From Anaeramoeba ignava BMAN (taxonomy: Eukaryota; Protista; Anaeramoebae), in contig JAPDFW010000058.1 in the NCBI GenBank assembly GCA_028826165.1, forward strand, positions 372,001 to 436,000: a stretch of DNA of 64,000 nt, given 5' to 3'. The notes under the pieces were generated by a model, which had not been told where the DNA came from, did no database searches, and saw only the letters and a program-made list of their open reading frames with translations. Below are positions 2,541 through 54,869 of the stretch, one piece after another (positions within the stretch are counted from its first letter, which is position 1; every line of letters begins with the position of its first letter). The translations under genes and the position numbers were made by a program.

Positions 2541-2617
2541 TTCATTTCAATCATTTTTTTTTCAAAATTAAAAAATCCAAAAATCCATTTTTCATTTTTT
2601 AAATTTATTTTAAGAAA

Positions 2618-4379: not shown

Positions 4380-4403
4380 TTTATTCTAATATGTATTTTT
4401 TTT

Positions 4404-19266: not shown

Positions 19267-20745
19267 ATGATAAAATATTCAAATTTAGAAAAACTTTCAA
19301 ATGATTTAAAAAATTTATTTCAAAATCAAAATAAAAATGAAAAAGAAAGTTATTTTGATTTTGAAATAATTTGTGAACAAAATAAAACTTCATTTAAAAC
19401 TCATAAATCAATTCTTTCTTCAAGAAGTCAATATTTTAAATCTCTTTTCAAATCAAAAATGAAAGAATATCAAGAAAATAAATTAATTCTAAAAGATGTT
19501 TCAAGTTCAATTCTATTTCCAATTTTAAATTATCTTTATTCAGGAAAGATTAAAATTAATTCAGAAAATGCAATTCAAATTTTAATTTTTTCATCAAAAT
19601 ATTTAATTGATGATTTAATTAAAATTTGTTCAAATTTTATCAAAAAGAATTTACAATTTGAAAATGTTGTTGATATTCTTAAATTATCTGAATCAATGAA
19701 CTTAAATCAATTATTTGATTCTTCTTATCAATTTATTTCTGAAAATTTTGAAGAATTCATCAAAACTCCATTTTTTCTTGAACTTGAAGAAAATCGTTTA
19801 AATTCAATATTATCAAATAATTTTATTGATACAGATGAATTCGAAATTTTTGAATCAATAATAAAATGGGGAAAACATAAATTAAATATTAATCAAGAAA
19901 AAGATAATCAAAAACTGAATAAAGAAGAAAAAGAAAAAATTCAAGATCAAATTTTAAATGTTATTGAAAAAATAAGATTTATTCATTTTTCACAAGAAGA
20001 ACTTGAATATACTTTGAAAGAAGATTTAATTCCAAATCAATATCTTCGGGAATTAGTTCATTTTTTATTGTTACGAAATAAAGAAAATGAAAATGAATTA
20101 GAAGAATTTATTGAAAAAGAAAATCAAATCCAAAATTCATTCATTTTCAAACCAAGATTCGGTTTAAATTTTTCAGAAATAATACAAGAAAAAGAAGATT
20201 TCAAGAAAATAAAAGAATGGATAAATGATAATGAATTCTTTTACAGAATGGGATTAGGATTTTCAGCAGAAAGAGATGGATTTAATTCTTTCGAATGGCA
20301 TAAAAAATGTGATGAAAAAGGAAAAACATTAGTTATTATCAAAACCAAAGATAATTTTATTTTTGGAGGATTTACTTCAGTTGGATTTACAACTGATAAA
20401 TCAAAATGGAGAAAAGAAAATAGGGAAGATGAAGATGGATATATTCCAGATCCAAATGCATTTATTTTTTCATTAAGAAATGATAAGGATAATAGAGTTC
20501 CAGTGAAATTTCCAATTAAAAAAGATGAAGAAGAAAATGCAATTTTTTATCAAAAAATTAGTGGTCCAAATTTTGGAAATCGAGATTTTTATTTATTTCC
20601 TAATTTATATAAAATCGATTCTAATTTTGGTTCTACTTATAAACTTCCTTATGGAATTAAATATGGAACAAAAAAAGCTAAAAGTTATTTAGCTGGTTCT
20701 TATGATAAATTGATTGTTGATGAACTTGAAACTTTTTTCATTTAA
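19267..20745 (+). CDS. BTB/POZ-BACK-TLDc protein
   Basis: DFEIIC...FKTHKSILSSRSQYFKSLF (BTB), BACK helices, and TLDc motifs RDGF..FEWHKKCD.KGKTLVIIKT..FIFGGFT, AFIFSL, GPNFG, ELETF. Confidence 0.92.
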   Translation: MIKYSNLEKLSNDLKNLFQNQNKNEKESYFDFEIICEQNKTSFKTHKSILSSRSQYFKSLFKSKMKEYQENKLILKDVSSSILFPILNYLYSGKIKINSENAIQILIFSSKYLIDDLIKICSNFIKKNLQFENVVDILKLSESMNLNQLFDSSYQFISENFEEFIKTPFFLELEENRLNSILSNNFIDTDEFEIFESIIKWGKHKLNINQEKDNQKLNKEEKEKIQDQILNVIEKIRFIHFSQEELEYTLKEDLIPNQYLRELVHFLLLRNKENENELEEFIEKENQIQNSFIFKPRFGLNFSEIIQEKEDFKKIKEWINDNEFFYRMGLGFSAERDGFNSFEWHKKCDEKGKTLVIIKTKDNFIFGGFTSVGFTTDKSKWRKENREDEDGYIPDPNAFIFSLRNDKDNRVPVKFPIKKDEEENAIFYQKISGPNFGNRDFYLFPNLYKIDSNFGSTYKLPYGIKYGTKKAKSYLAGSYDKLIVDELETFFI

Positions 20746-20874
20746 AAAAATTTCAAAATTCAATTCATTTTTCATTTACTTTCAATCAAATTAAATTCTT
20801 CAAATTAATAAATAAGAAAACAAATCCAATTATAAATAATTTCAAATAAATTTAAAAATGTGATTAAAAATTTT

Positions 20875-21390
20875 AAAAAATGAATTGAAAAATTTAATTG
20901 AAAAATATTTAAATTTCTTATTAGTTTTGATTTAATATTTAATTTAAATTCTTTTTTAAAATTAATTGAATATTAAATATTTATTAGTAAAATAGATTAA
21001 AATAGATTAATTTCTTTTTAAAAAATGAATTGAAAAATCGAATTAAAAAATATCTAAATTTCTTAATATTTTTAATTTAATATTAAATTTAAATTCTTTT
21101 TTAAAATTAGTTGAATATTAAATATTTATTATTAAAATTTATTAAAATAGATTAATTTCCCTTTTAAAAAATAAATTAAAAAATTGAATTGAAAAATATT
21201 TAAATTTCTTAATAGTTTTGATTTAATATTTAATTTAAATTCTTTTTTAAAATTAATTGGATATTAAATATTTATTATTAAAATTAATTAAAATAGATTG
21301 ATTTCCTTTTTAAAAATAAATTAAAAAATTAAATTGAAAAATATCTAAATTTCTTAATAGTTTTGATTTAATATTTAATTTAAATTTTGT
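20875..21390. repeat. ~150-bp repeat family, block 2
   Basis: Same unit as 18765-19150, about 3.5 copies. Confidence 0.85.
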
Positions 21391-21619
21391 ATTTCTGATT
21401 ATTTCATAAATATTTCTATTATTATTCTTTATTATTCTTTATTTATTATCTTTAAAAAACAATTTTTCAATTTAATCTTCTTTTTAATAATATTTTTAAA
21501 TTAAAATTAAATTATTTATAATTGGATTTGTTTCCCTATTTATTTATTTGAAGAATTTAAATTGATTGAAAGTAAATGAAAATAAAATTGAATTTTGAAA
21601 AAAAAATGAAAAAAAGTTT

Positions 21620-24600
21620 TTAAATGAAATAAGTTTCAAGTTCATCAACAATCCATCCATTATAAGAACCAGCTAAATAACTTTTAGCTTCATTTGTGTA
21701 TTTTTTAATTCCATTAGGTAGATTATAACTAGTACCAAAATTTGAATAACCAGATTGTAAATCAGAATTTAAAAGAAAATCACCTATAAATATTTTAATA
21801 AAGATAAATAATTAATTTTAATAATAATTAATAATAATTTAATTTAAAATTAATTTTATTTTAAATTTAAATAATAATATTATTTATTATATTAATATTT
21901 TGGATTATTTATTATTTTAATTTTAATTATAATAATAAATATTTATTAAATATAAATTATTTACGAACTATTTTAATAAAGATAAATAATTTAATTTTTA
22001 ATAATAATTAATAATAATTTAATTTAAAATTAATTTTATTTTAAATTTAAAAATAATAATATTATTTATTATATTAATATTTTGGATTATTTATTAATTT
22101 AATTTTAATTATAATATTAAATATTTATTAATTATAAATTATTTACAATCTATTTTAATAAGAGATAAATAATTAATTTTAATAATAATTAATAATAATT
22201 AATAATAATTTTATTTTAAATTAAAATAATAATATTATTTATTATATTATTATTTTGGATTATTTATTATTTTAATTTTAATTATAATAATAAATATTTA
22301 TTAATTATAAATTATTTACAACCTATTTTAATAAAGATAAATAATTAATTTTAATAATAATTAATAATAATTTAATTTAAAATTAATTTTATTTTTAAAA
22401 TTTAAATAATAATATTATTTATTATATTAATATTTTGGATTATTTATTTATTTAATTTTAATTATAATATTAAATATTTATTAAATATAAATTATTTACC
22501 ATCTATTTTAATAAAGATAAATAATTAATTTTAATAATAATTAATAATAATTTAATTAAAAATTAATTTTATTTTTAAATTTAAAAATAATAATATTATT
22601 TATTATATTAATATTTTGGATTATTTATTAATTTAATTTTTAATTATAATAATAAATATTTATTAAATATAAATTATTTACCATCTATTTTTAATAAAGA
22701 TAAATAATTAATTTTTAATAATAATTAATAATAATTTATTTTAAAATTAATTTTATTTTAAATTGAAATAATATTATTTATTATATTAATATTTTTGGAT
22801 TATTTATTAATTTAATTTTAATTATAATAATAAATATTTATTAAATATAAATTATTTTACCATCTATTTTAATAAAGATAAAATAATTAATTTTTAATAA
22901 TAATTAATAATAATTTAATTTAAAATTTATTTTTATTTTTAAATTTAAATAATAATATTATTAATTATATTAATATTTTGGATTATTTATTAATTTAATT
23001 TTAATTATAATATTAAATATTTATTAATTATAAATTATTTTACCATCTATTTTAATAAAGATAAATAATTAATTTTAATAATAATTAATAATAATTTAAT
23101 TTAAAATTAATTTTATTTTTAAATTTAAATAATAATATTATTTATTATATTAATATTTTGAATTATTTATTTATTTAATTTTAATTATAATAATAAATAT
23201 TTATTAATTATAAATCATTTACCATCTATTTTAATAAAGATAAATAATTAATTTTATTTTAAAATTTAAATAATAATTTAATTTAAAATTAATTTTATTT
23301 TTAAATTTAAATAATAATATTAATTATTATTATATTAATATTTTTGGATTATTTATTAATTTAATTTTTAATTATAATAATAAATATTTATTAAATATAA
23401 ATTATTTTACCATCTATTTTAATAAAGATAAATAATTAATTTTAATAATAATTAATAATAATTTAATTTAAAATTTATTTTATTTTAAATTTAAATAATA
23501 ATATTATTAATTATATTATATTATTTTGGATTATTTATTAATTTAATTTTAATTATAATATTAAATATTTATTAATTATAAATTATTTTTACCATCTATT
23601 TTAATAAAGATAAATAATTAATTTTAAATAATAATTAATAATAATTTATTTTTTAAATTAATTTTATTTTTAAATTTAAATAATAATATTATTTATTATA
23701 TTAATATTTTGGATTATTTATTTATTTAATTTTAATTATAATAATAAATATTTATTAAATATAAATTATTTACTCCCTATTTTTAATAAAGATAAATAAT
23801 TAATTTTAATAATAATTAATAATAATTTATTTTAAAATTAATTTTATTTTAAAATTTAAATAATAATATTATTAATTATATTAATATTTTGGATTATTTA
23901 TTAATTTAATTTTAATTATAATAATAACTATTTATTAAATATAAATTATTTACAATCTATTTTAATAAAGATAAATAATTAATTTTAATAATAATTAATA
24001 ATAATTTATTTTAAAATTAATTTTATTTTAAATTGAAATAATAATATTATTTATTATATTAATATTTTGGATTATTTATTAATTTAATTTTAATTATAAT
24101 AATAAATATTTATTAAATATAAATTATTTATATTTACATCCTCCAAAACTTGGACCATAACTTAAACTATAATAAATTGCATTTTCTTCTCCTTGTTTAA
24201 TTATAAATTTCTTTGGTTTTCGATCATTTTTATCATTTCTTAATGAAAAAATAAATGCATTTGGATCAATAATATATCCATATCCATAATTTGGATAATC
24301 TAACTTTGAATCTAACTTTAAATCTGAATCTGACTCTGAATCTGAATCTGAATCTGAATCTGAATCATCTTCATTCCATTTTGATTTATCAGTTGTCCAT
24401 CCAACTTGAGTAAAACCTCCAAAAATAAAATTATCTTTTGTTTTGATAACAACTAATGTTTTTCCTTTATTATCAACTGCTTTATGCCATTTTTTAGAAT
24501 TAAATCCATCTCTTTTTGCTGAAAATCCTTTTTTCATTTTGGAAAAGAAATTATTATCATTTATCCATTCTTGTAATTTAATGATATATTCTTTTCCTTG

Positions 24601-25838
24601 AATAATTTTTGAATCTGAAAAAATCTTCAACAATTTAAGATTTTGAATTTCATCTTTTTGTTTGAGAATCTTATCTTTCTTTTCAACTTCTTTCTTCCAT
24701 TTCTCTTCAATTTCCTTTTTTTGTTTGTCATTTTCTGATTTCAATTTTTGATTTTCAGATTCAAATGATTTGATTCTTTTATCTCTTCTTTTAATTTTAT
24801 TATCTTTCTTTTCAACTTCTTTCTTCCATTTCTCTTCAATTTCCTTTTTTTGTTTGTCATTTTCTGATTTCAATTTTTGATTCCATTGTTTTTGTTTTTC
24901 AGTTTTAGATTTCAAATCTTGATTCTCCTTTTCTTTTTCTTTGATTTTCTTTTCTTTTTCTTTAATTTTTGTTTGATTTTCTTGATCTTGAATTTCAAAA
25001 ATAGTTCTTTCAAAATGAATTAAAAAAGAATTTGGAAGAAAAATATCAAATTGTTTTAATTTATCAAAATCTTGTTTTGAAATTGAATCTTTATCAAATA
25101 ATGAAAAAAAAGAATGAAATAATCTTTTCTTTGCATTTATTTTCTGTTTATATTTCCTTAATTTTAATGAATTAACTCTTTTTTCAATCCAATTATTTAA
25201 AAATTGAAAAAAATCAAATTGAAAAATTTCTTTTTTTTCTTGTTTAAATTGAATAAATTTGATAATTTCTTCTTTAGTTAAATTGAATAAATTCTTATTA
25301 TTTTGAATTTGGGAAAAATTTTGATTTATTAATTCAAAACATTTTATTTCAATTTCATTTGAATTTAAATTTCGATTTTGGAATAAAAATTGGAAAAATT
25401 TGAATAATTAATTGAATTTAAAATTTTTGAATAATTTCTTTTCAATAAATTTAATTTAAAATAAATTGAAATTTCCAATAATTGAATAAGATTTTCTTGA
25501 TTCTCAAAAGAAATATTTCCATAATAAATATAACTTAAAATTGATTCCATTTCTTTTTTATTAAATTGATTTAAAGAAATAAAAAGAGATTCTTGCCTTA
25601 ATGATTCATTAAAAAAAGGAGATCTTGAAGATAAAATTGATTTATGAACTTTAATTTCAAAAGGATTTGATTCATTCTCAACAAAAATTGAAAAATCTTT
25701 AAATGAATTTCCATTTAAAAGGTTTGAATAATTTTTAATTAAATTTTTTGTTACTTTTTTTTCTAAATTTTTCTTTTCATTTTGATTTGCATTTTGATTT
25801 GCATTTTCATTTTGGTTATTATTATTATTATTATCCAT
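21620..25838 (-). CDS. BTB-coiled-coil-TLDc protein; exon 1 25838-24138 (homopolymer frameshifts near 25390-25440), last exon 21783-21620, microexon/intron array between
   Basis: N-terminus nearly identical to the 32610 gene. TLDc ...GPSFGG T|GT donor at 24137; acceptor AG at 21785-21784 gives (C)DFLLNSDLQSGYSNFG...YLAGSYNGWIVDELETYFI*. Confidence 0.85.
21784..24137 (-). repeat. 13 tandem ~180-bp units, each a GT...AG intron, separated by twelve 3-nt putative microexons
   Basis: Minus-strand junctions all read aaatAG-NNN-GTaaa; NNN in transcript order = ATT, GGA, ATG x7, GTT, ATT, TTC. Confidence 0.85.
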
Positions 25839-25989
25839 TTTGTTTTTTGTGTTTTTGTTGTATTTTTGTTTGTGTTTTTTAAAAAAAAAAGGAAAAAAAT
25901 GAAAAAAAAATTTAAAAAAAAAATAAATAAAAAAAGTGGATTTTGAAAATAAATAAAAATATAAAAAATAAGAATAAATTTAAATTAAT

Positions 25990-26460
25990 AATTAATTTAA
26001 TTCCTTTTTAAAAATTAATTTTATATTAAATATTTATTATTAAAATCAATTAAAATAGATTTATTTCCTTTTAAAAAATATATTGAAAAATTAAATTGAA
26101 AAAATATTTAAATTTATTAATAGTTTTGATTTAATATTTAATTTAAATTCTTTTTTAGAAATTAATTGAATATTAAATATTTATTATTAAAATTAATTAA
26201 AATAGATTTATTTCCTTTTAAAAAATGAATTGAAAAATTTAATTAAAAAATATCTAAATTTCTTAATAGTTTTAATTTAATATTTAATTTAAATTTTTTT
26301 TAAAATTAATTAAATATTAAATATTTATTATTAAAATAGATTAAAATAGATTAATTTCCCTTTTAAAAAATAAATTGAAAAATTGAATTAAAAAATAATT
26401 AAATTTATTAATAGTTTTGATTTAATATTTAATTTAAATTCTTTTTTAAAATTAATTAAA
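25990..26460. repeat. ~150-bp repeat family, block 3 (divergent promoter region of the BTB-TLDc and A2M-Ubl genes)
   Basis: Same unit as blocks 1 and 2. Confidence 0.85.
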
Positions 26461-26571
26461 AAAAATTCTTAATTTGAAAAAAAAGAAACAAATACATCAT
26501 CAATTAAGAAAAATATTTTAAAAAAATTTATTTTTATTTTCATTTTTTTCATTTTTATTCTTAAAAAAAAA

Positions 26572-29500
26572 ATGCTTTCAATCGAACAAATTTCAACAAC
26601 ACTTCTCAATAGCCAAAGATTTATTCCTTACATTTCACTTGATAAACAATTATATCAACCAGGAGAAAACATTTTCATTCGAGCAGTAGTTTTAAATTCT
26701 TTTACAAACGAACCATTAATTGATCCAAATGTATTAAATCAACTCAAAAATGCAAAAATCAAAATTCAAGATGCAAGAGATCAAACAGTTTTAGAAGAAG
26801 ATTTAAAATTGGATAATATAAAAGAAAGTAGTGTTTATTCATATTGTTGGAAAACTGATGATTCAACAAAAGGAGGAGAATATAAAGTGGTTATTTCTCA
26901 TTTTATTTCTGATCAATTATTTTCATCTGAAAGAAAATTTGTTATTAGACCTTTTAGAATTCCAAGATTGAATAAGAACATTGAATTTCTTAAGCAAAGT
27001 TATTCAGCAAAAGATGAAGTTGAAGCTATTTTATCAGTTCAAAGAGTAGAAGGCGAAAATAATAAATTGGAGGAAATTTCTGTTACTTATCATGCTCAAA
27101 ATGAATCTGATATTTTTAAAACTGAAACAAAAAATCTTGATTCAAAAGGAAAATTATTGATTAAATTTACTTTGCCTTCTCTTATAATTTCTGATGTTGT
27201 TTTGAATTGTATTATTAAGGACGGAGATGTTCAAGAAAATGCAATTAAAAACGTTCCTGTTGTGAATTCAAATTTTGATGTTAGTTTCTTTCCTGAAGGA
27301 GGAAATTTGGTTTATGGAATCAAATCAAGAGTTTATTTTGAAGCAACAAATGATATCAATGAACCAATTGATTTGGAAGCAGAATTAGTTTCTTCAAACA
27401 ATGAAACAGTTAATCAAAATATCATTTTAAAAACTCAACATGAAGGAAGAGGATTTTTTGAATTTACTCCCCAAAATGATAACAAATACTCTTTGAAAGT
27501 TATCAAACCAAAAAAAGATTCTGAATCAAAAATAGAATTATTTAAAATTCTAAAAGAAGGAGTTTCAATGAAAGTTTTAAAACCCTCATTTTCATTTGGA
27601 GAAGAAATTGAGATTGAAATGATTTCTTCTTATTCAGGAAATTTCAAAGTGGGATTATTTAAAAAGGAAATTGAGATTGGACAAGAATTAGTATCAATTT
27701 CAGAAGATCAAAAATACAAACCAATTATTGTTAAAATTTCACCAAAAAATGAAAAATACCAACAAGGAATAATAAGAATAACAATTTACAAAGTTGAACA
27801 AAAAGAAAATCAAAAAATACTAATTATTCCAACAACAGAAAGATTAACATTCATTAAACAAAAAAGAGAGCTTAATTTCAATATTAAACTTAATAAAGAA
27901 TCTTATATTCCAGGTGAAAAAGTTGAAATGATTATTGAAACAAAGGATCAAAACAATGAACCAATTAATTCAATTTGTGGAATAACAGTTACAGATAATT
28001 CAGTTTATGAAATGACTGAAAAAGCTGATCGAAATCCAAATTTATTTTCTATGGTTCATTTAGAAAATGAAGTATTAAAATTTCATGACTCTGAATCCTA
28101 TCTTGATTTTAATGATGAAATTAGTCAAAGTATTTTTTATATTTTTATATTTTTATATTTTTATTTAAAAAATTAATTTATTTTATTATTATTTTTATTA
28201 GAAAAACTTGATCTTTTACTTGGTATTCAAGGATGGAGAAAATTTGTTTTTTCAAATGATTTTGCTCAAATTTCCAAAAATCAAGAGAAAATTTTGAAAG
28301 CTTTTGTAATTCCTGAAAATATTATCAATTTCCATATTAAATATGATCAAGATTCAATTTCTCTTTCTTGTCTTCCACAAACACCTTTAATCAAAATCAA
28401 AGAACTTATTGAAAAAGGATTTGATATTCCAATTTCATCTCAATATCTTTTCAAAGAAAAGAATATCTTTCAGAAAATGATAAATCAATAAATGATTTGA
28501 AAATTGAACAAGATCAAGAACTCAAAGTTTTGGATTCAAGAAAAACTGGAGAGAAAATATTCGTTAATGTTCTTGATATTGATTTAGTTTCATTAGATTA
28601 TAATCAAAACAACAAAATTTCTTCTGTTAAAAAATATTTTGAAGAAAATGAAGGAATGAAACAACAAAATCAAACAATATTTTTCCAAAATGAAAAATTA
28701 GAAGATGATAAAACATTAAATGATTGTGGAATAAAACATGGAGATGTACTTAAAATGGATTCAAGTGAAATTATGATTGAAATTCATTGTTCTAAATTTG
28801 AAACAATGAAAATTTTTATTGATCCAAAAGAAACTATTGGAAAAGTGAAACAAATTATTGAGGAAAAACTAGGATTCTTTCAAATTCAACAAGACCTTTT
28901 TTTCGACAATAAAAATTTAGGAGATGATAAAACTCTTCAAGAAAATAAAGTCAAACATAAATCAAGAATGCTATTTTTCTTAAACGGATCCAAAAATTTA
29001 AAAATGAAAGTTAAAGTTCAACATTTTGAGAAAATTATTGAATATGAAGTTTTTACAAATGAGGGAATCTATAATTTAAAGAAAAAAATTGAAGAAAATT
29101 TCAAAATTCTTTGTGACAAACAAAAATTATTTTATAATCGAAGTGAAATTTACATTTATAATAATTTTCAAACTGAAATTATTCCAAATAATGCAATTAT
29201 ACAATTAATTACAGATGAAGATGAAGATAGGGATTTGAAATTAACTATAAAAAATGATTCCAAAAATGAAGAATATCAAATTGAAACAAAATTTGGAGCA
29301 ACACTTGAAGAATTAAAAGAAATTATTGAAGAAAAAGTAGGGATTGTACAAAACAAACAAATAACTCTCTTAAATGAAAAAGAACTTGATGATTTAGATA
29401 AAAAATTACTTTATTATTTAATCAATAATGGAGATGTTATTCATGTTCAAGAAAATAGAAAACAGAAACCTTATTTTGATATCAATATTCAATCAGTTTC

Positions 29501-32500
29501 AGGAAAAGTTTTTTCATTAAATGTGAAAGAATCAGACAAAATTAGATTTTTGAAAAAACAAATTCAAAAACAATTACAAATTCCTTTTGAAAAACAAATT
29601 CTTTTTTATAAAGGAAAATATTTGAATGATGTATCAACTCTATCATCCGTTTCAATTTTCAAGAAAGATTCAAACAATGTTTTAATTCAAATGGTTGATC
29701 CTAATACAAAAGTTATTGTCAATATTAACATGCCTGGTGATGAAAAAACAGTACATCAAATTGAATGTGAAATTGGAAACACAATTTATGATTTGAAAAA
29801 ATTAATTGAAGAAAAAGGAATTGTTTCAGAATCCTTTGATTTCTATCAACCTTCAAACCATCGACTTTCAGAAAATGAATTATTAGCTTCTTTAGATTAT
29901 TTCTTGGGACAAAAGGAAATGTCTCTTGATTTAGATTATTATTCAGGTTGTGAAAAAATTGAAATTAAAACATTAACAGGAAAAATTTACATTTTTGAAG
30001 TTAATCCAGATACATTAGTTGGAGAGGTTAAACAAAAAATGGAAAACGAAACAAGAATTCCAGCAGAGCAACAGAGATTCGTTTTTAAAGGGAAATTAAT
30101 ACAAAATGAAAAAACTTTAGGGGATTATAGAATTGAAAATGGAGCATTAATTCATATGGTGTTATTATTAAGAGGAGGAGGTGGAGGAGGATATATACAA
30201 CAACCAGTTCGTAAAAATCAAGTAAAAAAAGAAGTCCCACAAATTGCAAAACAAGATGGATTGAAATTAATCAATGATAAAAAACCATTTCATATTGAGA
30301 TTGAACCATTTGCAAGAGTTTATTCTCATAAATTAAACAAAAAAGAAGAAATTCAAGAAAAAGAAAGAAAAGATTTTACAAACACAATTTATTGGAATCC
30401 ATCAATAAAAAATGAAATTGAAATTGAAAATGAAAATGAAAATCAAGTTAAAAAAAGTTCAGATTTTAAAATTGAATTTGAAACAAATGATTCAATTACT
30501 TCATTTAGAGTTTTAATTGATGGATTTACTAATGATGGAATAATCGGAAGTTCAAATTCTTTTGTTTTTGCTTCAAAAAAACCTTTTTATATTGAACCTA
30601 AATTACCACTTGAAATAACTTATAGTGATGAAATTAACTTTCCTGTTTATTTTGTGAATAATTTCCATAATACTTCATTGAAAATTGAAATGAATATTGA
30701 AGCAAAAAATTTGAAATTAAGTGAAAACAAAAAACAATTTGAATTAAAACCAAATGAAAGATTTGCAGAATTTATCAAAGCAACAATTTTAGAAAGTAAA
30801 TCAAATTTAATTTCCAAAAACATTCCAATCAAAATTACAGCAAAATGTATTGATAAACCATTTATTCAAGATTCAATTACAAAGGAATTGAAAGTTGTTC
30901 CAAATGGATTTCCAGATTATTACATTTATTCAGGAATTCTTTCAAACAAAATCAAAAAAATTGAGAATAAATTTACACTTCCTTCAATCATTCCAAAAAG
31001 TTTAACTTTCTCAATTCAACTTTATCCATCAATTCTTGCTAATTTTACAGAATCAATCAAAAGTTTAATTAAAGAACCTTATGGATGTTTTGAACAAACA
31101 TCAAGTGTTCTTTATCCAATGATAATGGCACAAAAATACTTTAAAAAAACAGGATATGATGATTTAGAACTAATTCAAAAAGCAAACACTTTTATTCAAA
31201 AGGGATACAAGAAATTAATATCATATGAATGTAAAAATGGAGGATTTGAATGGTTTGGATCAGATCCAGCACATGAAGCATTAACATCAATGGGAGTTCT
31301 TGAATTTCTTGATTTATCAACAATATTTTCAGTTAATCAAGAAATGCTACAAAGAACAACAAGTTGGTTAATTTCTAGGAAAGATGAAGAATCAAAATCA
31401 TTCAAAAAAAATGCAAGAGCATTAGATTCATTTGGATATGCACCTCAACACACAACAGATGCTTATATCATTTGGTCTTTATCGGAAGGAAAAATTGAAA
31501 CTGAGAAAATTGGAGATATTATTCAAAGACTTTATCAAGAAACACATAAAGAACATGAAAATGATCCATATTATATTGCATTAGTTTCAGCAACAATGTT
31601 CAATACAAATCAAAATGAACAATCATTGGAATTGGGTAAAAAATTAGTTAAATTTCAAGATAAAAAAGAAGGATTTATTTCTGATTCAAAAACATCAATT
31701 ACATCATCAAAAGGATCAAATTTAATCATTGAAACAACATCTTTAGCAATTCTTTGTTGGATAAAACATGGAAAAGAATTCAGTAAGAATATTGCTCATG
31801 CAAGTGAATGGATTTTTTCAAAATGTTCATCAGGAAAATTTGGATCAACTCAATCAACTGTTTTAGCATTAAAAGCTTTATCTGCTTTTGATGATTTTTC
31901 TGATAAAGAACAAAAAGAAGAAATTTTGATTAATTTATCATTTGGAAAAACACAAAAACAAATTGAAATTGGAGAAAAACAAGAAGATTCTCTTGAATTC
32001 AAATTTGGAAATGAAATTTTTGAAAATGAAAAAGAAATTGATTTTGGAATTGAAATGGAAAAAGGAAAAATGATGAGATTTTCAACAAGATTTGATTATT
32101 ACACAGAAAAACCAAAAGATTCAACAAAATGTCCATTATCAATTTCCACAAAATTAAAAGAAGAAAAGATAAAATTAGGAGAAACATCAGAAATTCATGT
32201 TTCTATTGAGAATTTGGAAAATCAAGAATCAGGAATGGTTGTAGCCATTATTGGAATTGCAGGAGGAATTGAAACAAGATTTGAACAATTACAAAATCTT
32301 GTTAAGAAAGGAATTGTTTCTTCATTTGAATTGTTTGGAGCAAGACAAGTTGTTTTTTATTGGAGAGGAATGAATCCAAATCAAAAAATTGAATTTGATA
32401 TTGAAGTACTTGCAACAATTCCAGGAAAATTTAAATCATCTCCATCAAGAGTTTATTTGTATTATGGAGATGAAGAAGATAAGAAATGGATTGAACCTTC

Positions 32501-32522
32501 TTCTATTGAGATTTTCAATTAA
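26572..32522 (+). CDS. Alpha-2-macroglobulin/thioester protein with ~8 tandem Ubl domains in the bait region, ~1959 aa; intron 28130-28201; 1-nt frameshift at ~28457-28460
   Basis: MG motifs YISLDKQLYQPGE, FFPEGGNLV, HEGRG, SYIPGEKV, GITVTDNSV; spliced LDLLLGIQGWRKF; Ubl array ending LLLRGG; RKDFTNTIYWNP; thioester EPYGCFEQTSS (31086-31097); GGFEWFG; FGSTQSTVLALKAL; PSRVYLYY. Confidence 0.9.
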
Positions 32523-32609
32523 TTTTTCAAAAGCAATTTCCAAAATTTTTTTTTTTCATTTTTTCATTTTTTTTCTTTTCAAAAAATCAAAATCAAAAAA
32601 TAAAAGAAA

Positions 32610-34449
32610 ATGAATAATAGCAATAATGATGATAATAATAATAATAACAATAATAACCAAATTCAAAATGCAAATCAAAATGAAAATGAAAATGAAATGA
32701 AAAATTTAGAAAAAAAAGTAACAAAAAATTTAATTAAAGATTATTCAAACCTTTTAAAAGGAAATTCATTTAAAGACTTTTCAATTTTTGTTGAGAATAA
32801 ATCAAATCCTTTTGAAATTAAAGTTCATAAATCAATTTTATCTTCAAGATCTCCTTTTTTTAATGAATCATTAAGGCAAGAATCTCTTTTTATTTCTTTA
32901 AATCAATTTAATAAAAAAGAAATGGAATCAATTTTGAGTTATATTTATTATGGAAATATTTCTTTTGAGAATCAAGAAAATCTTATTCAATTATTGGAAA
33001 TTTCAATTTATTTTAAATTAAATTTATTGAAAGAAATTATTCAAAAAAAAATTTTAAATTCAATTAATTATTCAAATTTTTTCCAATTTTTATTCCAAAA
33101 TCGAAATTTAAATTCAAATGAAATTGAAATAAAATGTTTTGAATTAATAAATCAAAAATTTTCCCAAATTCAAAATAATGAAAATTTATTCAATTTAACT
33201 AAAGAAGAAATTATCAAATTTATTCAATTTAAACAAGAAAAAAAAGAAATTTTTCAATTTGATTTTTTTCAATTTTTAAATAATTGGATTAAAAAAAGAG
33301 TTAATTCATTAAAATTAAGGAAATATGAACACAAAATGAATTCAAAGAAAAGATTATTTCATTCTTTTTTTTCATTATTTGATAAAGATTCAATTTCAAA
33401 ACAAGATTTTGATAAATTAAAACAATTTGATTTTTTTCTTCCAAATTCTTTTTTAATTCATTTTGAAAGAACTATTTTTCAAATTCAAGATCAAGAAAAT
33501 CAAACAAAAATCAAAGAAAAAGAAAAGGAGAATCAAGATTTGAAATCTAAAACTGAAAAACAAAAACAATGGAATCAAAAATTGAAATCAGAAAATGACA
33601 AACAAAAAAAGGAAATTGAAGAGAAATGGAAGAAAGAAGTTGAGAAGAAAGATAAAGAGAATCAAAAATTGAAATTGGGATTTGAAAAAGAAAATAAAAA
33701 AAAAGATAAAATTCTCAAACAAAAAGATGAAGAAATCCAAAATCTTAAACTATCATTTGAGAAAGAAAATCAACAAATCAAAATTGAAAAAAAAATGAAA
33801 CACAATCAAAATGAAGAATCAAATCAAAATGAAAATAAATTATTGAAAATTTTTTCAGATTCAGAAATTATTACAGAAGAAGAATATATTATTAAATTAA
33901 AAGAATGGATAAATGATAATAAATTCTTTTACAGAATGAGATTGGGATTTTCAGCAAAAAAAGATGGATTTGATTGTTTCGAATGGCATAAAAAATGTGA
34001 TAAAAAAGGAAAAACATTAATTATTATCAAAACCAAAGATAATTTTATTTTTGGAGGATTTACTTCAGTTGGATGGACAACTGATAAATCAAAATGGAGT
34101 AACGAAATAAAGCTTTTCAAAGGATCTATTGAAGATCCAAATGCATTTCTTTTTTCATTAAGAAATGATAAAAATGATCGAAAACCAGAGAAATTTCCAA
34201 TTAAAAAAGATGAAGAAGATGATGCAATTATGTATAATTTAGAAAATGGTCCAATATTTGGATATTCCACTGGGTTATATAAAGATGATTTATGGATTTC
34301 TACAGAATTAAAAACTGGATGGACAAATTTTGGTAATTGTTATGAACTTCCTTATGGAATTAAATATGGAACAAAAGAAGCTAAAAGTTATTTAGCTGGT
34401 TCTAAGGATAGTTGGATTGTTGATGAACTTGAAACTTTTTTTCATTTAA
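32610..34449 (+). CDS. BTB-coiled-coil-TLDc protein; true end probably ETFFI* at 34449
   Basis: BTB and TLDc motifs. An extra T in gaaactttttttcatttaa, relative to the paralogs, causes apparent read-through into a microsatellite to 34805. Confidence 0.88.
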
Positions 34450-35195
34450 AAAAATTTTCAAAATCAAATTCAAAATCAAAATCAAAATCAAAATCAAATT
34501 CAAATTCAAAATTAAAATCAAAATCAAAATCCAAATTAAAATCAAATTCAAAAAAAATCAAAATCGAAATCAAATTCAAATTCAAATTCAAATTAAAACC
34601 AAATTCAAAATTAAAATTAAAATTCAAATTCAAAATTAAAATCAAATTCAAAATTAAAATCAAAATCAAAATTAAAATTAAAATCAAATTCAAAATCAAA
34701 TTCAAATTCAAAATCAAAATTAAAATCAAAATCAAAATCAAAATCGAAAATCAAAAATCAAAATCAAAAAAAATCAAAATCAAAAAATTCAAAATCAAAA
34801 ATTAAAATCAAAATCAAAATCAAAATCAAAAATCAAATTCAAAATCAAAATTAAAATCAAATTCAAAATCAAAATTAAAATCAAAATCAAAATCAAAATC
34901 AAAATCAAATTCAAATTCAAAATCAAAATCAAAATTAAAATCAAAATTAAAATCAAAATCAAAATTAAAATCAAAATCAAAATAAATTAAAATCAAAATC
35001 AAAATCAAAATTAAAATTAAAATCAAAATCAAATTCAAATTCAAATTCAAAATCAAAATTAAAATCAAAATCAAAATCAAATTCAAAATCAAAATCAAAA
35101 TCAAAATCAAAATTAAAATTAAAATTAAAATCAAAATCAAAATGAAAATCAAAATCAAAATCAAAATCAAAATCAAATTCAAAATCAAAATTTTT
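34450..35195. repeat. (AAAATC/AAAATT)n intergenic microsatellite
   Basis: Hexamer run seen directly. Confidence 0.9.
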
Positions 35196-35247
35196 TTTTT
35201 CATTTTTTTTTTCATTTTTTTCTTTTCAAAAATTTTTTAAATAAAAA

Positions 35248-36744
35248 ATGGAAAAATATTCACATTTAGGAAAACTTTCAAATGATTTAAAAAATTTATT
35301 TCAAAATCAAAAAGAAAAAGAAAATTATTTTGATTTTGAAATAATTTGTGAACAAAATAAAACTTCATTTAAAACTCATAAATCAATTCTTTCTTCAAGA
35401 AGTGATTATTTTAAATCCCTTTTTAAATCCAAAATGAAAGAATATCAAGAAAATAAATTAATTATAAAAGATGTTTCAAGTTCAATTCTATTTCCAATTT
35501 TGAATTATTTTTATTCAGGAAAAATTAAAATTAATTTAGAAAATGCAATTCAAATTTTAATTTTTTCATCAAAATATTTAATTGATGAATTAATTGAAAT
35601 TTGTTTAAATTTTATCAAAAACCATTTACAATTTGAAACTGTTGTTGATATCCTTAAATTATCTGAATCAATGAATTTCAATCAATTATTGGATTCTTCC
35701 TATAAATTTATTTCTAAAAATTTTGAAAAATTTATCAAAACTCCATTTTTTCTTGAACTTGAAGAAAATCATTTAAATTCAATATTATCAAATGATGAAA
35801 TCTTAATAAATGAATTTGAACTCTTTGAATCAATAATAAAATGGGGAAAACATAAATCAAATATTAATCAAGAAAAAGATAATCAAAAACTCAATAAAGA
35901 AGAAAAAGAAAAAATTCAAGATCAAATTTCAAATGTTATTGAAAAAATAAGATTTATTGATTTTACAAAAAAAGAATTTGAAAAAACTTTGAAAGAAGAA
36001 TTAATTCCAAAACAAATTTCAGAAAAATTAATTCAATTCCAAAAACTTCAAAACCAAGAAAATGAAAAAGAATTAAATCAATTTATTGGGAAAGAGTTAA
36101 AAGAATTTATTGAAAAAGAAAATGAAAATGAAAATTCATTCATTTTCAAACCAAAAATTGGTTTAAGTTGTTCAACAATAATACAAGAAAAAGAACATTT
36201 CAACAAATTAAAAGAATGGATAAATGATAATAAATTCTTTTACAGAATGAGATTGGGATTTTCAGCAAAAAAAGATGGATTTAATTGTTTCGAATGGCAT
36301 AAAAAATGTGATGATCAAGAAGAAACATTAATTATTATCAAAACAAAAGATAATTTTATTTTTGGAGGATTTACTTCAGTTGGATTTATAAGCAATTATG
36401 TACATTGGAGTAAAAATCTTGGAGAAGCTGGATATATTTCAGATGAAAATGCATTTCTTTTTTCATTAAGAAATGATAAAAATGATCGAAAACCAGAGAA
36501 ATTTCCTGTTAAATACTTGAAACATAGAACTGCTCTTTCTTATCAATACGATATTGGTCCAACTTTTGGAAAATTTTCTTCTGATCTTTTTTTGGATGAA
36601 AAATTAAAAACTGGATGGACAAATTTTGGTAATTGTTATGAACTTCCTTATGGAATTAAATATGGAACAAAAGAAGCTGAAGATTATTTAGCTGGTTCTT
36701 ATGATCAATGGGAAGTTGAAGAACTTGAAACTTTTTTCATTTAA
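35248..36744 (+). CDS. BTB/POZ-BACK-TLDc protein
   Basis: Close paralog of the 19267 gene; intact 498-aa ORF. Confidence 0.92.
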   Translation: MEKYSHLGKLSNDLKNLFQNQKEKENYFDFEIICEQNKTSFKTHKSILSSRSDYFKSLFKSKMKEYQENKLIIKDVSSSILFPILNYFYSGKIKINLENAIQILIFSSKYLIDELIEICLNFIKNHLQFETVVDILKLSESMNFNQLLDSSYKFISKNFEKFIKTPFFLELEENHLNSILSNDEILINEFELFESIIKWGKHKSNINQEKDNQKLNKEEKEKIQDQISNVIEKIRFIDFTKKEFEKTLKEELIPKQISEKLIQFQKLQNQENEKELNQFIGKELKEFIEKENENENSFIFKPKIGLSCSTIIQEKEHFNKLKEWINDNKFFYRMRLGFSAKKDGFNCFEWHKKCDDQEETLIIIKTKDNFIFGGFTSVGFISNYVHWSKNLGEAGYISDENAFLFSLRNDKNDRKPEKFPVKYLKHRTALSYQYDIGPTFGKFSSDLFLDEKLKTGWTNFGNCYELPYGIKYGTKEAEDYLAGSYDQWEVEELETFFI

Positions 36745-36749
36745 AAAAA

Positions 36750-37690
36750 TTTTCAAAATCAAATTCAAATCAAAATTCAAAATTAAAACCAAATTCAAAA
36801 TTAAAATTCAAAATCAAATTCAAATCAAATTCAAATCAAAATCAAAATAAAATTCAAATTCAAAATTAAATTCAAAATTTAAATTCAAAATTAAATTCAA
36901 AATTTAAATTCAAAATTAAATTCAAATTAAAATTAAATTTAAATTCAAAAATCAAATCAAAATTAAAATCAAAATCAAAATTCAAATTCAAATTCAAAAT
37001 TAAAATCAAAATTAAAATCAAAATTAAAATTAAAATTAAAATCAAAAAAATCAAAATTCAAAGTCCAAAATTCAAATTCAAATCTAAAATCAAAATCAAA
37101 ATCAAAATTCAAAAATCAAAATCAAATTCAAATCAAATTCAAAATTCAAATTCAAAAAATCAAAAAAATCAAAATCAAAATCAAAAAATTAAAATTAAAA
37201 TCAAAAATTAAAACCAAATTCAAATTCAAAAATTCAAAATTCAAAATTAAAAATTCAAAAATTAAAATTAAAAATCAAAAAAAAAAAAAAAATCAAAATC
37301 AAAATCAAAATCAAAATTAAAAATCAAATTAAAAAAATCAAATTCAAAATCAAATTCAAAATCAAAAAACTAAAAAAATCAAAAATTCAAAATCAAAAAT
37401 TCAAATTCAAATTAAAATTCAAAATAAAAATTAAAATTCAAAAAATCAAATTAAAATCAAAATTAAAATCAAAATCAAATCAAAAAAATTAAAATTCAAA
37501 ATTTCAAAATTAAAAATCAAAATCAAATTCAAAAAAAATCAAAATCAAAAATTAAAATCAAAAATCAAAATTAAAAAATCAAATTCAAAATTAAAAATTA
37601 AAATTAAAATCAAAAAAAAAAAAATCAAAATCAAAAAAATCAAAAAATAAAAATCAAAATTAAAATTCAAAAATCAAAATCAAAATTTTA
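36750..37690. repeat. Degenerate (AAAATC/AAATTC)n intergenic microsatellite
   Basis: Seen directly. Confidence 0.9.
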
Positions 37691-37741
37691 TTTTTCATTT
37701 TTTTTTCATTTTTTTCTTTTCAAAAATTTTTTAAATAAAAA

Positions 37742-39228
37742 ATGACAAATTATTTAAATTTAGAAAAACTTTCAAATGATTTAAAAAATTTATTTCAAAA
37801 TCAAAAAGAAAAAGAAAGTTATTTTGATTTTAAAATAATTTGTGAACAAAATCAAATTTCATTTAAAACTCATAAATCAATTCTTTCTTCAAGAAGTGAT
37901 TATTTTAAATCTCTTTTTAAATCCAAAATGAAAGAATATCAAGAAAATAAATTAATTCTAAAAGATGTTTCAAGTTCAATTCTATCTTCAATTTTGAATT
38001 ATTTTTATTCAGGAAAAATTGAAATTAATTTAGAAAATGCAGTTCAAATTTTAATTTTTTCATCAAAATATTTAATTGATGATTTAATTGGAATTTGTTT
38101 AAATTTTATCAAAAACCATTTACAATTTGAAACTGTTGTTGATATTCTTAAATTATCTGAATCAATGAATTTCAATCAATTATTGGATTCTTCCTATAAA
38201 TTTATTTCTAAAAATTTTGATAAATTTATTGAAACTCCATTTTTTCTTGAACTTGAAGAAAATCATTTAAATTATATTTTATCAAATTATGAAATCTTAA
38301 CAGATGAATTTGAACTCTTTGAATCAATAATAAAATGGGGAAAACATAAATCAAATATTAATCAAGAAAAAGAATTGAATAAAGAAGAAAAAGAAAAAAT
38401 TCAAGATCAAATTTCAAATGTTATTGAAAAAATAAGATTTATTGATTTTACAAAAAAAGAATTTGAAAAAACTTTGAAAGAAGAATTAATTCCAAAACAA
38501 ATTTCAGAAAAATTAATTCAATTCCAAAAACTTCAAAACCAAGAAAATGAAAAAGAATTAAATCAATTTATTGGGAAAGAGTTAAAAGAATTTATTGAAA
38601 AAGAAAATGAAAATGAAAATTCATTCATTTTCAAACCAAAAATTGGTTTAAGTTGTTCAACAATAATACAAGAAAAAGAACATTTCAACAAATTAAAAGA
38701 ATGGATAAATGATAATGAATTCTTTTACAGAATGAGATTGGGATTTTCAGCAAAAAAAGATGGATTTAATTGTTTCAAATGGCATAAAAAATGTGATAAT
38801 CAAGAAGAAACATTAATTATTATCAAAACCAAAGATAATTTTATTTTTGGAGGATTTACTCAGTTGGATTTATAAACAATGAAATTTATTGGAGTAAAAA
38901 TCTTGAAGAAGCTGGATATATTTCAGATGAAAATGCATTTCTTTTTTCATTAAGAAATGATAAAAATGATCGAAAACCAGAGAAATTTCCTGTTAAATAC
39001 ATGAAAAATAGAACTGCTCTTTATTATCAAGACGATATTGGTCCAACTTTTGGAAAATTTTCTTCTGATCTTTTTTTGGATGAAAAATTAAAAACTGGAT
39101 GGACAAGTTTTGGTAGGAGTTATAAACTTCCTTATGGAATTAAATATGGAACAAAAGAAGCTGAAGATTATTTAGCTGGTTCTTATGATCAATGGGAAGT
39201 TGAAGAACTTGAAACTTTTTTCATTTAA
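37742..39228 (+). CDS. BTB/POZ-BACK-TLDc protein, tandem copy of 35248, with a 1-nt frameshift at ~38860
   Basis: tttactcagttgga vs tttacttcagttgga in the paralog; otherwise collinear to ELETFFI*. Confidence 0.85.
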
Positions 39229-50622: not shown

Positions 50623-52650
50623 ATGAATTCTTTGTTATTTTTATTTTTACTTTTACTTGCTTTTCCTTGTTATTTTTCAACACAAACTTATAGAGCTGCA
50701 GTTTTAGAGTTTTCTCCTTATCAATTTCAACCTGGAGATAATTATCAACTTCTTCTTCGAAATCTTGCTGAAATGGAGGTTTATTTCCAAAATCTAAACC
50801 AAAATTAAAATATAAATCTAAATCTAAATATAAATATAAATATAAATCAAAATCTCAAAATCAAAATATAAATCAAAATCAAAATATAAATCTAAATCAA
50901 AATCTAAATATAAATCTAAATCAAAATATAAATCTAAATATAAATCTAAATATAAATATAAATATAAATCTAAATATAAATCTAAATCAAAATCAAAATA
51001 TAAATATAAATCAAAATATAAATCTAAATATAAATATAAATATAAATCTAAATATAAATATAAATATAAATATAAATCAAAATATAAATCAAAATCAAAA
51101 TCTAAATCTAAATATAAATATAAATCAAATTCAATATCAAAATCAAAATCAAAATATAAATATAAATATAAATATAAATCAAAATCTAAATCAAAATCTA
51201 AATATAAATCAAAATAAAAATCAAAATCAAAATCAAAATCAAAATCAAAATATAAATCTAAATAGAAATATATCAGTGAAGCAAAAAAACAAGGAGCACA
51301 AATAATTGTATTACCAGAATATGGACTTGAAGGATGGTATGAAGAATGGGATCGAGATAATATACTTCCAATACTTGAACCATTACCTAATTATTATGCA
51401 GGAAAAACATGCAATCCATGTTTAGAAAAATGCAAAGATAAGAATGGAAACAATATAGATTTCAAGAAATTACCAGTATTAAAAGAAGCATCATGTATTG
51501 CAATGAAATATTCAATAATAATAGCAATTGATGGAATAAATGATGTTCAATATTGTGAAAATCAAACAGATTGTCCACCAGATGGAAGATTTCAATTCAA
51601 TACTCTTGTTGTACTTGATGAACAAGGTTTTCTTGTTGCAAAATATCATAAAGGACATAACTATGAATCAGAATCTAATTATTTCGACCAACCAAAAACA
51701 CCTGAAATTGTTTATTTTGATTCAAGTTTTGGTGTTCGTTTTGGAATGTTCATCTGTTTTGATATTCTTTGGAATCAACCAACTTACTCTCTTGTTTATG
51801 AACTTGGTATTTCCAATATTCTCTTTCCAACTTATTGGGGTAATTTGGCTCCTGCTTTTTCTGCTAATGAATTTCAAGTTGGTTTTTCAAAAAGTAATAA
51901 AGTTAACTTTTTAGCTTCTAATATTGGTTATGATGGTTTTTACAGTTCTGGTTCAGGAATATTTTCAAATGGTCTTCCACTTGCTTTTTATACTAATGAT
52001 ACAATTTATCCTTCAAATCGATTACTCATTGCAGATGTTCCTATTATTATTGAAGAAAAACCTTCTATTATTTCTTTTGATTCTAATTTTTTGGAATTTG
52101 ATGATTTATCAATACCTTCTTTTAAGAAATTTCAAGCAATTCCTGGAACAAGTGGAAGTTTATTTTTATCAGTTTCTGGAGTTGATTGTCAAGTGAATTA
52201 TTCAATTAGTAAATTTTTGTTTTTGTTTAAATTTTTTGCTAGTTCAAAAAAAAAATTCTTATTTATTTTTTTCTTAATAAAAAAAAAAACAAAGGTCAAA
52301 ATCAAAGTGAATCATTTGAAATTGAAGAATATGCTTTATTTGCTTATTCTGGTCTTGGTTTTTTTCCTATTCAAATTTCTTTTTGTGGTTTAACAAGATG
52401 TGTTCCTGATCCAAATCAACAATTTGATTGTGATGTTTATCAAACAGTTCATTCAAATACTTTTTTTGACTCTTTTGAAATTGAATCCAATTTACAAAAT
52501 TCACAACTTTCTTTTGCTATGGCGAATGAAGATGGATTACAAATTATTAATGATGAATATTTAAATATTGGAAATGGAACAATTTCAAATAAAGATGGAA
52601 AAGTTTTCAAATTATTAAGTTCAGTTTTTTTACAAGTTTTCCAAGAATAA
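50623..52650 (+). CDS. Vanin/pantetheinase/biotinidase-family nitrilase, copy 1; introns ~50779-51265 and ~52209-52293
   Basis: Signal peptide, YRAAVLEF, catalytic Glu (VLPEYG), Lys (AKYHKGH) and Cys (FICFDI); CPPDGRFQFNT. Confidence 0.9.
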
Positions 52651-52960
52651 TTCAAAATAATTTAATTTAAAATTGAATTCAAAATTTAATTCAAAATTTA
52701 ATTCAAAATTTAATTCAAAATTTAATTTAAAATTTAATTCAAAATTTAATTCAAAATTTAATTCAAAATTTAATTCAAAATTCAATTCAAAATAAAAATC
52801 GGAAAAAAATCTATTTATTCATTTTAAATAATTTATATTTTAATTTATATTTTTTAATGTTGAATTTTTTTCAATTTCATTTATCAGAAAATTTATTTCT
52901 TAAATTAAATTTATTTTTTAAATTCATTTTTTTCTTGTTTAAAAAGAAAGAAAAATTGAA

Positions 52961-54869
52961 ATGAATTCTTTGTTATTTTTATTTTTACTTTTACTTGCTT
53001 TTCCTTGTTATTTTTCAACAAAAACTTATAGAGCTGCAGTTTTAGAGTTTTCTCCTTATCAATTTCAACCTGGAGATAATTATCAACTTCTTCTTCGAAA
53101 TCTTGCTGAAATGGAGGTTTATTTCCAAAATTAAAATCAAAAATATCAAAATATAAATATAAATCTAAATCTAAATATAAATATAAATATAAATATAAAT
53201 CTAAATCAAAATCAAAATATAAATATAAATATAAATCAAAATATAAATATAAATCTAAATCAAAATATAAATCTAAATCAAAATATAAATCAAAATATAA
53301 ATATAAATCTAAATATAAATCTAAATATAAATATAAATCTAAATATAAATATAAATATAAATCTAAATATAAATCTAAATATAAATCTAAATCTAAATCT
53401 AAATCAAAATCTAAATCTAAATCTAAATATAAATCAAAATCTAAATAAAAATCAAAATCAAAATCAAAATCTAAATCTAAATAGAAATATATCAGTGAAG
53501 CAAAAAAACAAGGAGCACAAATCATTGTATTACCAGAATATGGACTTGAAGGATGGTATGAAGAATGGGATCGAGATAATATACTTCCAATACTTGAACC
53601 ATTACCTAATTATTATGCAGGAAAAACATGCAATCCATGTTTAGAAAAATGCAAAGATAAGAATGGAAACAATATAGATTTCAAGAAATTACCAGTATTA
53701 AAAGAAGCATCATGTGTTGCAATGAAATACTCAATAATAATAGCAATCGATGGAATAAATGATGTTCAATATTGTGAAAATCAAACAGATTGTCCACCAG
53801 ATGGAAGATTTCAATTCAATACTCTTGTTGTACTTGATGAACAAGGTTTTCTTGTTGCAAAATATCATAAAGGACATAACTATGAATCAGAATCCAATTA
53901 TTTCGACCAACCAAAAACACCTGAAATTGTTTATTTTGATTCAAGTTTTGGTGTTCGTTTTGGAATGTTCATCTGTTTTGATATTCTTTGGAATCAACCA
54001 ACTTACTCTCTTGTTTATGAACTTGGTATTTCCAATATTCTCTTTCCAACTTATTGGGATAATTTTGATCCTGCTTTTTCTGCTAATGAATTTCAAGTTG
54101 GTTTTTCAAAAAGTAATAAAGTCAACTTTTTAGCTTCTAATATTGGTTATGATGGTTTTTACAGTTCTGGTTCAGGAATATTTTCAAATGGTCTTCCACT
54201 TGCTTTTTATACTAATGATACAATTTATCCTTCGAATCGATTGCTCATTGCAGATGTTCCTATTGTTATTGAAGAAGAACCTTCTATTATTTCTTTTGAT
54301 TCCAATTTTTTGGAATTTGATGATTTATCAATACCTTCTTTTAAGAAATTTCAAGCAATTCCTGGAACAAGTGGAAGTTTATTTTTATCAGTTTCTGGAG
54401 TTGATTGTCAAGTGAATTATTCAATTAGTAAATTTTTGTTTTTGTTTAAATTTTTTGCTAGTTCAAAAAAAAAATTCTTATTTATTTTTTTCTTAATAAA
54501 AAAAAAAACAAAGGTCAAAATCAAAGTGAATCATTTGAAATTGAAGAATATGCTTTATTTGCTTATTCTGGTCTTGGTTTTTTTCCTGTTCAAATTTCTT
54601 TTTGTGGTTTAACAAGATGTGTTCCTGATCCAAATCAACAATTTGATTGTGATGTTTATCAAACAGTTCATTCAAATACTTTTTTTGATTCTTTTGAAAT
54701 TGAATCTAATTTACAAAATTCACAACTTTCTTTTGCTATGGCGAATGAAGATGGATTACAAATTATTAATGATGAATATTTAAATATTGGAAATGGAACA
54801 ATTTCCAATAAAGATGGAAAAGTTTTCAAATTATTAAGTTCAGTTTTTTTACAAGTTTTCCAAGAATAA
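52961..54869 (+). CDS. Vanin/pantetheinase-family nitrilase, copy 2 (tandem duplicate)
   Basis: Nearly identical to copy 1 with the same intron positions. Confidence 0.9.

Follow-up and report, generated by a model that had tools for sequence, protein, structure and literature searches.

In a 64,000-nucleotide stretch of the Anaeramoeba ignava BMAN genome (assembly GCA_028826165.1, contig JAPDFW010000058.1, positions 372,001 to 436,000; hereafter the window), the forward strand carries between positions 26572 and 32522 a gene (KAJ5077470.1, labelled C59 among its paralogs) whose product combines the body of an alpha-2-macroglobulin (A2M) with a chain of ubiquitin-like domains (Ubls). A sequence-only reading of this DNA had joined three open reading frame pieces into a protein of about 1959 residues by means of a 72-bp intron and one missing A; we found the pieces at the places given there, and removing the intron and restoring the A yields exactly 1959 codons. 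Exon 1 (26572..28129) covers MG1 to the first half of MG6 and the start of the LNK insert. The predicted intron (28130..28201, 72 bp, GT..AG ends, 97% AT) holds a stop codon, its donor site is common to paralogs C24 and C70, and the NCBI models P0001-P0003 are spliced at this position. Exon 2 (28202..32522) forms one frame once an assembly slip at 28456 is discounted. Indeed, in each of the four read sets the A run behind this position is longer by one A, so that the frameshift, which had been named as a possible flaw of the reconstruction if real, is an assembly slip. In run X2, the contig with the extra A matches the window letters at nearby variable sites, so the extra A belongs to the C59 copy; paralog C70 has a longer A run at the same place. 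In addition, read contigs join the last Ubl to the plug motif (X1 record 4, 29750-30389), and paralogs C24, C70 and C74 hold the LNK motif, the Ubl chain and the thioester domain within a single open frame. The read sets, the bridging contigs and the open frames of the paralogs thus led us to reject both a true frameshift and a chimeric join. The NCBI model, named polyubiquitin-c, was also rejected, since it sidesteps the slip with a false intron that makes it 48 residues too short, and since the repeats are only 22-43% identical to ubiquitin, with one GG. Note that the gene was searched exon by exon rather than as a joined model, the joined proteins used being database entries.

The domain anatomy follows the A2M plan on both sides of the Ubl chain. 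Exon 1 matches Pfam MG2 (1e-10) and A2M_BRD (7e-4) and found no match among PDB sequences, while exon 2 matches ubiquitin in 6 stretches (E 8e-64), followed by A2M, TED (1e-27) and A2M_recep (1e-6). The motif LDLLLGIQGWRKF (28207..28245), first taken for an MG-ring motif, belongs instead to the LNK insert and is near-invariant in the A2M subfamily of the gene. It is followed by Ubl1-Ubl7 (28315..29951), which are degenerate, lack the di-Gly and show 22-34% identity to ubiquitin where scored (starts at about 28315, 28542, 28761, 28989, 29226, 29466 and 29703, from spacing and alignment), and by Ubl8 (29952..30179), which ends in LLLRGG (30162-30179). Eight tandem units of 73-83 residues each, the number originally proposed, are thus supported by spacing and alignment, but only six pass Pfam PF00240. 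The GGGG said to follow the last LRGG does start at 30180 and, with the 62-residue low-confidence linker (30180..30365; predicted local distance difference test score below 50 in a paralog model), belongs to the most variable part of the gene. Then come the RKDF plug (30366..30377), the counterpart of the R-x-x-F in the C3 alpha'NT and the A2ML1 BR-C, the second half of MG6 with MG7 and the first part of CUB (30378..31061; Pfam A2M and structure models), the thioester domain (31062..31916; Pfam TED), and the second part of CUB with the MG8/receptor-binding domain (31917..32519; Pfam A2M_recep). The thioester motif GCFEQ (31083-31097) is intact, as had been claimed, and aligns with the GCGEQ of CD109, whereas the catalytic His of CD109 is replaced by Asp (31425-31427). 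This Asp is found in 182 of the 188 homologs with a readable motif, and the R, D and F of the plug motif are invariant among 58 homologs.

Concerning localization, the hydropathy of the N-terminus (0.95, against 2.5-3.5 for secreted bacterial relatives) indicates no signal peptide, in line with the intracellular A2M that had been proposed. The ordinary-bait paralogs of both Anaeramoeba species, A. ignava and A. flamelloides (L018-L024, P0004-P0009), start with Met-Gly, which suggests N-myristoylation-like N-termini; the Ubl-baited ones do not. Given the lack of a signal peptide and these starts, the A2M paralog family looks cytosolic.

The last Ubl is the unit on which our interpretation depends. 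In the window copy, it keeps the ubiquitin residues L8, I36, R42, K48, H68, V70, L73, R74, G75 and G76, but Arg72 is replaced by Leu; the description of this domain as closely ubiquitin/NEDD8-like was therefore too strong, since it is the most ubiquitin-like of the eight but reaches only 43% identity to host ubiquitin. The features of a DUB (deubiquitinase) substrate, namely the beta-grasp fold, the I44/I36 patches and the di-Gly, are present, apart from the Leu for Arg72. Across the family, the last domains of Ubl-baited genes are 43-84% identical to host ubiquitin, and an LxGG stands on a Ubl in all six genes of the two species (LRGG, LKGG, LRGG, LIGG, LRGG+LKGG and LRGG), with a perfect LRLRGG tail in C70, P0010 and P0387. 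The conservation of the terminal LRGG, which was to be checked, thus holds in the form LxGG, mostly on the last folded domain (5/6 genes), and a Gly follows in 5/6. Conversely, GG is absent from all 28 Ubls that lie upstream in the four A. ignava genes. Among the six GG domains, conservation reaches 83% at DUB-contact positions, chosen from general knowledge, compared with 60% at the other positions of the surface.

Structure models place this chain in the bait position. In the AlphaFold model of the intact paralog C70, three MG6 strands come before the insert and four after it. Ubl5, Ubl6 and Ubl8 form confident beta-grasp folds, Ubl3 does so in part, and Ubl1, 2, 4 and 7 remain of low confidence because the alignment is noisy there; Ubl8 superposes on ubiquitin with Z 17 and a root-mean-square deviation of 0.4. 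In the model of an ordinary paralog, R-N-D-F (residue 406-407) aligns with C3 from 742 (mature) / 764 onward, the RKDF of the window gene corresponding to C3 742-745, and the C3 segment from 742 is the alpha'NT plug (PMC9156758). The paralog models match C3, C4, CD109, A2ML1 and ECAM, and the best structural matches of the post-bait half are C3/C4/C5 (Z 15). Since it lies between the split MG6 halves, with the plug aligned to the C3 alpha'NT, the Ubl chain as modelled in the paralogs occupies the bait/anaphylatoxin slot directly before the R-x-x-F plug, where the sequence-only reading had expected it. Furthermore, an insert is present between LNK and plug, as the A2M/thioester-protein superfamily requires, and the MG domains, the split MG6, the CUB with inserted TED and the MG8 stand in the canonical superfamily order (Pfam and paralog models). 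Judged by domain order, plug and thioester motif, the window protein is a member of this superfamily.

The A. ignava genome holds about 12 A2M paralogs, four of which (C59, C24, C70 and C74) have an 8-Ubl bait and one (C116) a Snf7 domain in the bait slot, the remaining ones having low-complexity baits. In A. flamelloides, Ubl baits occur in two genes, both present in two strains (P0010/P0121 and P0387/P0448), so that the search for this architecture ended with six genes in two species. In body-only trees, the Ubl-baited genes of both species group with moderate support (SH-like approximate likelihood ratio test 91 and 84), and the first matches of the A. flamelloides body sequence are the A. 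ignava Ubl genes, while the Ubl arrays lack collinearity between the species (8 domains vs 4-5, with an identity of about 25%). A single origin of Ubl baits with later turnover is therefore likely but, given the moderate support and the arrays, not proven. The nearest relatives outside Anaeramoeba are bacterial A2Ms of the Planctomycete type, together with proteins from Pelomyxa and Protostelium, with 34-38% identity over the C-terminal 720 residues and the motifs LLLGTQGWRRF / R.DF.ET.YW; many bacterial members of the subfamily are secreted. None of the about 330 non-Anaeramoeba relatives listed has a ubiquitin domain. Beyond these relatives, a metagenome scan gave no Ubl+A2M combination, nor did one further search that was weak and swamped by polyubiquitins. 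Baits of the listed relatives are mostly low-complexity, a few holding PspA, OmpA, CarboxypepD_reg or transmembrane hairpins, and bait lengths of 150-600 residues are accommodated in the subfamily.

Three recent paralogs share 87-97% identity in the body (TED 93-97%), 46-63% in Ubl8 and 20-39% in the linker. The body of Ubl-baited genes is under purifying selection (nonsynonymous to synonymous rate ratio, dN/dS, about 0.3-0.6), while in the bait dS goes up together with dN, giving a dN/dS of at most about 1. By these comparisons, the bait is hypervariable, without shown positive selection. As regards the source of the Ubls, a recent gene conversion of the last one from polyubiquitin is unsupported (C70 shows 81-85% DNA identity, with third positions at 69-82%), and the poly-Ubl genes at window 1-4400 were rejected as bait donors because they share only a generic 24-30% similarity. 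These tandem genes (18-4379) have a ubiquitin-like head domain (61-66%) that has lost the di-Gly, and paralog C70 is preceded, at a distance of about 25 kb, by an array of similar kind. A second polyubiquitin-like array class, with 77-residue units about 80% ubiquitin-identical and an LRGG followed by Asn at the end of each unit, was found at L047-L056 (C65, C147 and C74); true polyubiquitin lies on contig C75, and the genome holds at least 150 ubiquitin-family matches.

Other folded domains were observed in the same slot. Paralog C116 (L026:3202-4672, minus strand) has an intron-rich Snf7/ESCRT-III domain there, with the thioester motif intact. In P0261 (L057:4206-8738, JGI metagenome), probably a bacterial A2M, the bait holds a whole PspA/IM30 domain (Pfam 4e-42), which parallels the Snf7 case; a flotillin/Band 7 gene is nearby. 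The A2M homolog P0265, also metagenomic, has an OmpA-like domain in its bait.

Compared with known systems, the window protein shares with A2M inhibitors (human A2M, the monomeric A2ML1, CD109 and the E. coli/Salmonella A2Ms) the MG ring, LNK and bait within MG6, the R-x-x-F plug, the CUB with inserted TED, the GCxEQ thioester and MG8. It differs from them by the lack of a signal peptide, a di-Gly cut as predicted trigger, the Asp at the His position and the bait itself, which is short and unstructured in the inhibitors but here has about 650 residues, mostly folded Ubls with only 62 unstructured. As in complement C3/C4/C5, in which a specific protease cuts it off, a folded module stands before the alpha'NT plug. 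However, the window protein has no anaphylatoxin domain, furin site or C345C (no such Pfam matches; it ends after MG8), it would be intracellular, and its module mimics a cytosolic protein. The catalytic His of thioester proteins gives hydroxyl reactivity (PMC7864068). C3 and C4B have this His, whereas the window protein has Asp there. C4A also carries Asp at this position. The Planctomycete/Phycisphaera-type A2Ms are direct sequence relatives with the same motifs. With polyubiquitin, ubiquitin-ribosomal fusions and ISG15/FAT10, the chain shares the tandem beta-grasp folds and a terminal LxGG followed by more sequence, the arrangement of precursors that DUBs process. In contrast to the near-identical 76-residue repeats of polyubiquitin, each ending in GG, the window Ubls are diverged and hold one GG; moreover, the Ubls of the A2M genes are inserted inside another fold, with one GG domain per gene (two in P0010). 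Plant NLRs with integrated decoys have a copy of a host protein built into an immune scaffold. The concept is the same here, with ubiquitin or Snf7 at a variable slot, but this is a resemblance only, since the scaffold is a thioester protein and the predicted output a covalent bond. By usual criteria, the window protein thus fits neither classical A2M inhibitors, nor complement, nor polyubiquitin. The claim that no A2M of this architecture had been described agrees with our literature search, which found none with a ubiquitin or folded ubiquitin bait, many subscription papers lying outside its coverage; macroglobulins and the window protein go unmentioned in the Anaeramoeba genome papers.

The bait slot, the intact thioester, the lack of a signal peptide and the conserved di-Gly fit a cut after GG as the trigger. 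The protein is probably a cytosolic, monomeric A2M-family member whose bait was replaced by a Ubl chain, and we tentatively propose, at slightly less than an even chance, that it is a covalent trap in which a DUB or another LxGG protease cutting after the GG of the last Ubl would be captured by the thioester. In the A2M family, bait cleavage frees the C-terminal stub of the bait to withdraw through a narrow channel and exposes the thioester, and monomeric members such as A2ML1 need covalent linkage with the protease for inhibition (PMC9352918, PMC9156758). A folded domain presumably could not pass this channel and would jam it, so that the trigger would have to be a cut located behind the last folded domain, which is where the di-Gly sits. 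The enzyme would thus bind the last Ubl and cut after GG, the plug would retract, and the thioester would bond to a surface lysine or amine of the cutting enzyme, the Asp instead of His suggesting an amine preference. The GG-less upstream Ubls would serve as a spacer or extra binding sites, and paralogs with different last domains could sample different enzymes. Plausible targets include effectors of intracellular bacteria, giant-virus proteases and USPs of selfish elements. A Dot/Icm Legionellales symbiont has been described in A. pumila, with no DUB named (bioRxiv 10.64898/2026.04.11.717937), as has giant-virus gene traffic in the Anaeramoeba context (PMC10710043). We count the bait diverging far faster than the body in favor of a trap, and the Snf7 (C116) and PspA (P0261) domains in the same slot in favor of baits made of folded cell proteins. 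Somewhat more speculatively, the Anaeramoeba A2Ms may form an intracellular immune family, made from a bacterial-type A2M, with interchangeable decoys, in which Ubl baits would trap DUBs and a sister gene would use an ESCRT-III bait, as the metagenomic homolog would use PspA.

Several observations weigh against such a trap. Positive selection on the bait is not shown, since dS rises with dN. In paralog C74 (L017:3231-7670), the thioester Cys is gone and so is the Asp, while the LIGG is kept. In P0010, a folded GG-less Ubl follows the last of two di-Gly domains. An unrelated thioester-less protein of a bacterial/fungal family (L045:25-2130, C13) carries the same cassette, in which degenerate Ubls precede a 91% ubiquitin-identical domain ending in LRGG-GGG. 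Cleavable linear ubiquitin fusions are normally cut fast in the cytosol, and with many host USPs (140 exon-level matches in the A. ignava genome) housekeeping enzymes could use up the C70 copy, which is close to ubiquitin. Finally, 10-20 added bait residues impair native folding of human A2M (PMC9352918).

The same di-Gly cut could serve the host itself, which we regard as unlikely without dismissing it: a host DUB would cut after GG as a maturation step or signal, like the convertase on C3/C4, and the thioester would tag bystanders or membranes, for instance the surface of a symbiosome, phagosome or invader, while the cut would leave the N-terminal half with a free ubiquitin tail, which E1/E2/E3 might be able to join to targets. 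The many host USPs, the perfect LRLRGG tails of C70, P0010 and P0387, the folded inserts filling the slot of the complement anaphylatoxin domain, the Snf7 and PspA inserts that look like membrane-targeting modules, the myristoylation-like starts of the ordinary paralogs and the cassette shared with L045 would all suit this explanation. However, by established rules the window domain, without Arg72 and 43% ubiquitin-identical, would be a poor E1 substrate; the fast divergence of the last domain among paralogs is less compatible with a fixed host partner, and the Asp instead of His speaks against glycan tagging.

A rather improbable explanation, already raised as an alternative by the sequence-only reading, makes the Ubl chain an adaptor (for the proteasome, p97 or UBA/UIM receptors) that sends the A2M with its cargo to degradation, the disordered linker being the bait for ordinary proteases. 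It accounts for the seven GG-less domains out of eight, and it agrees with a linker that resembles a classical bait in its lack of structure and its hypervariability, with the P0010 chain that ends without GG and with the routing of uncleavable ubiquitin fusions to p97/proteasome (PMC3507821). It does not account for the conserved di-Gly: an adaptor would be better off without GG, and the neighbouring poly-Ubl genes lost it while 6/6 A2M genes retain it.

Still less probable is a non-covalent decoy or a tolerated insertion, in which the huge bait would block the native thioester state, leaving a protein that merely binds ubiquitin enzymes or is cleaved by them, or the cassette would be a passenger. 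A genome rich in poly-Ubl arrays and ubiquitin-family matches, the thioester-dead C74, the non-collinear arrays of the two species and the impaired folding of human A2M with long baits (PMC9352918) point in this direction. Nevertheless, thioester motif loss is seen only in C74, and wherever the remaining Ubl-baited genes were read they retain the motif and the Asp; purifying selection acts on the body, and the architecture was maintained in two deeply diverged species. An assembly or annotation artefact fusing a poly-Ubl gene with an A2M gene, as the window frameshift and the lack of a single contig spanning the whole gene could suggest, has a negligible chance, being largely refuted already by three paralogs with one open frame each, by two more genes in two A. 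flamelloides strains and by contigs bridging the Ubl/A2M junction.

Other features of the genome and window were noted. Dispersed near-identical USP copies (302-303 aa open frames) occur on C128, C105, C1, C80, C24 and C59, a pattern consistent with a mobile element carrying a deubiquitinase. Several BTB-TLDc genes flank the A2M gene (window 19267-39228), a neighbourhood that may mean little because such genes are common in the genome. Two near-identical 296-aa open reading frames stand in tandem at 51503-54612, and we take them to resemble nitrilase/vanin-type hydrolases.

The known roles of A2M and complement proteins lie in extracellular or periplasmic defence, and we know of no natural protein inhibitor that covalently captures DUBs. 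If our proposal is true, a free-living protist would have coupled thioester chemistry to its cytosolic ubiquitin system, and the bait slot would accept whole folded domains. Engineered A2Ms show that a bait swap alters which protease springs the trap, although their designed baits are short peptides (PMC8267569, PMC9352918); a ubiquitin-baited A2M would then be a template for DUB-selective traps. It would also offer a test of the plug-in-channel model, which predicts that a cut is effective only if made behind the last folded domain, and a direct route to fish out the cutting enzymes, whether effector, viral, transposon or host. Altogether, these genes would then encode a natural suicide trap that acts on DUBs, and would give a single cell an internal system resembling complement.

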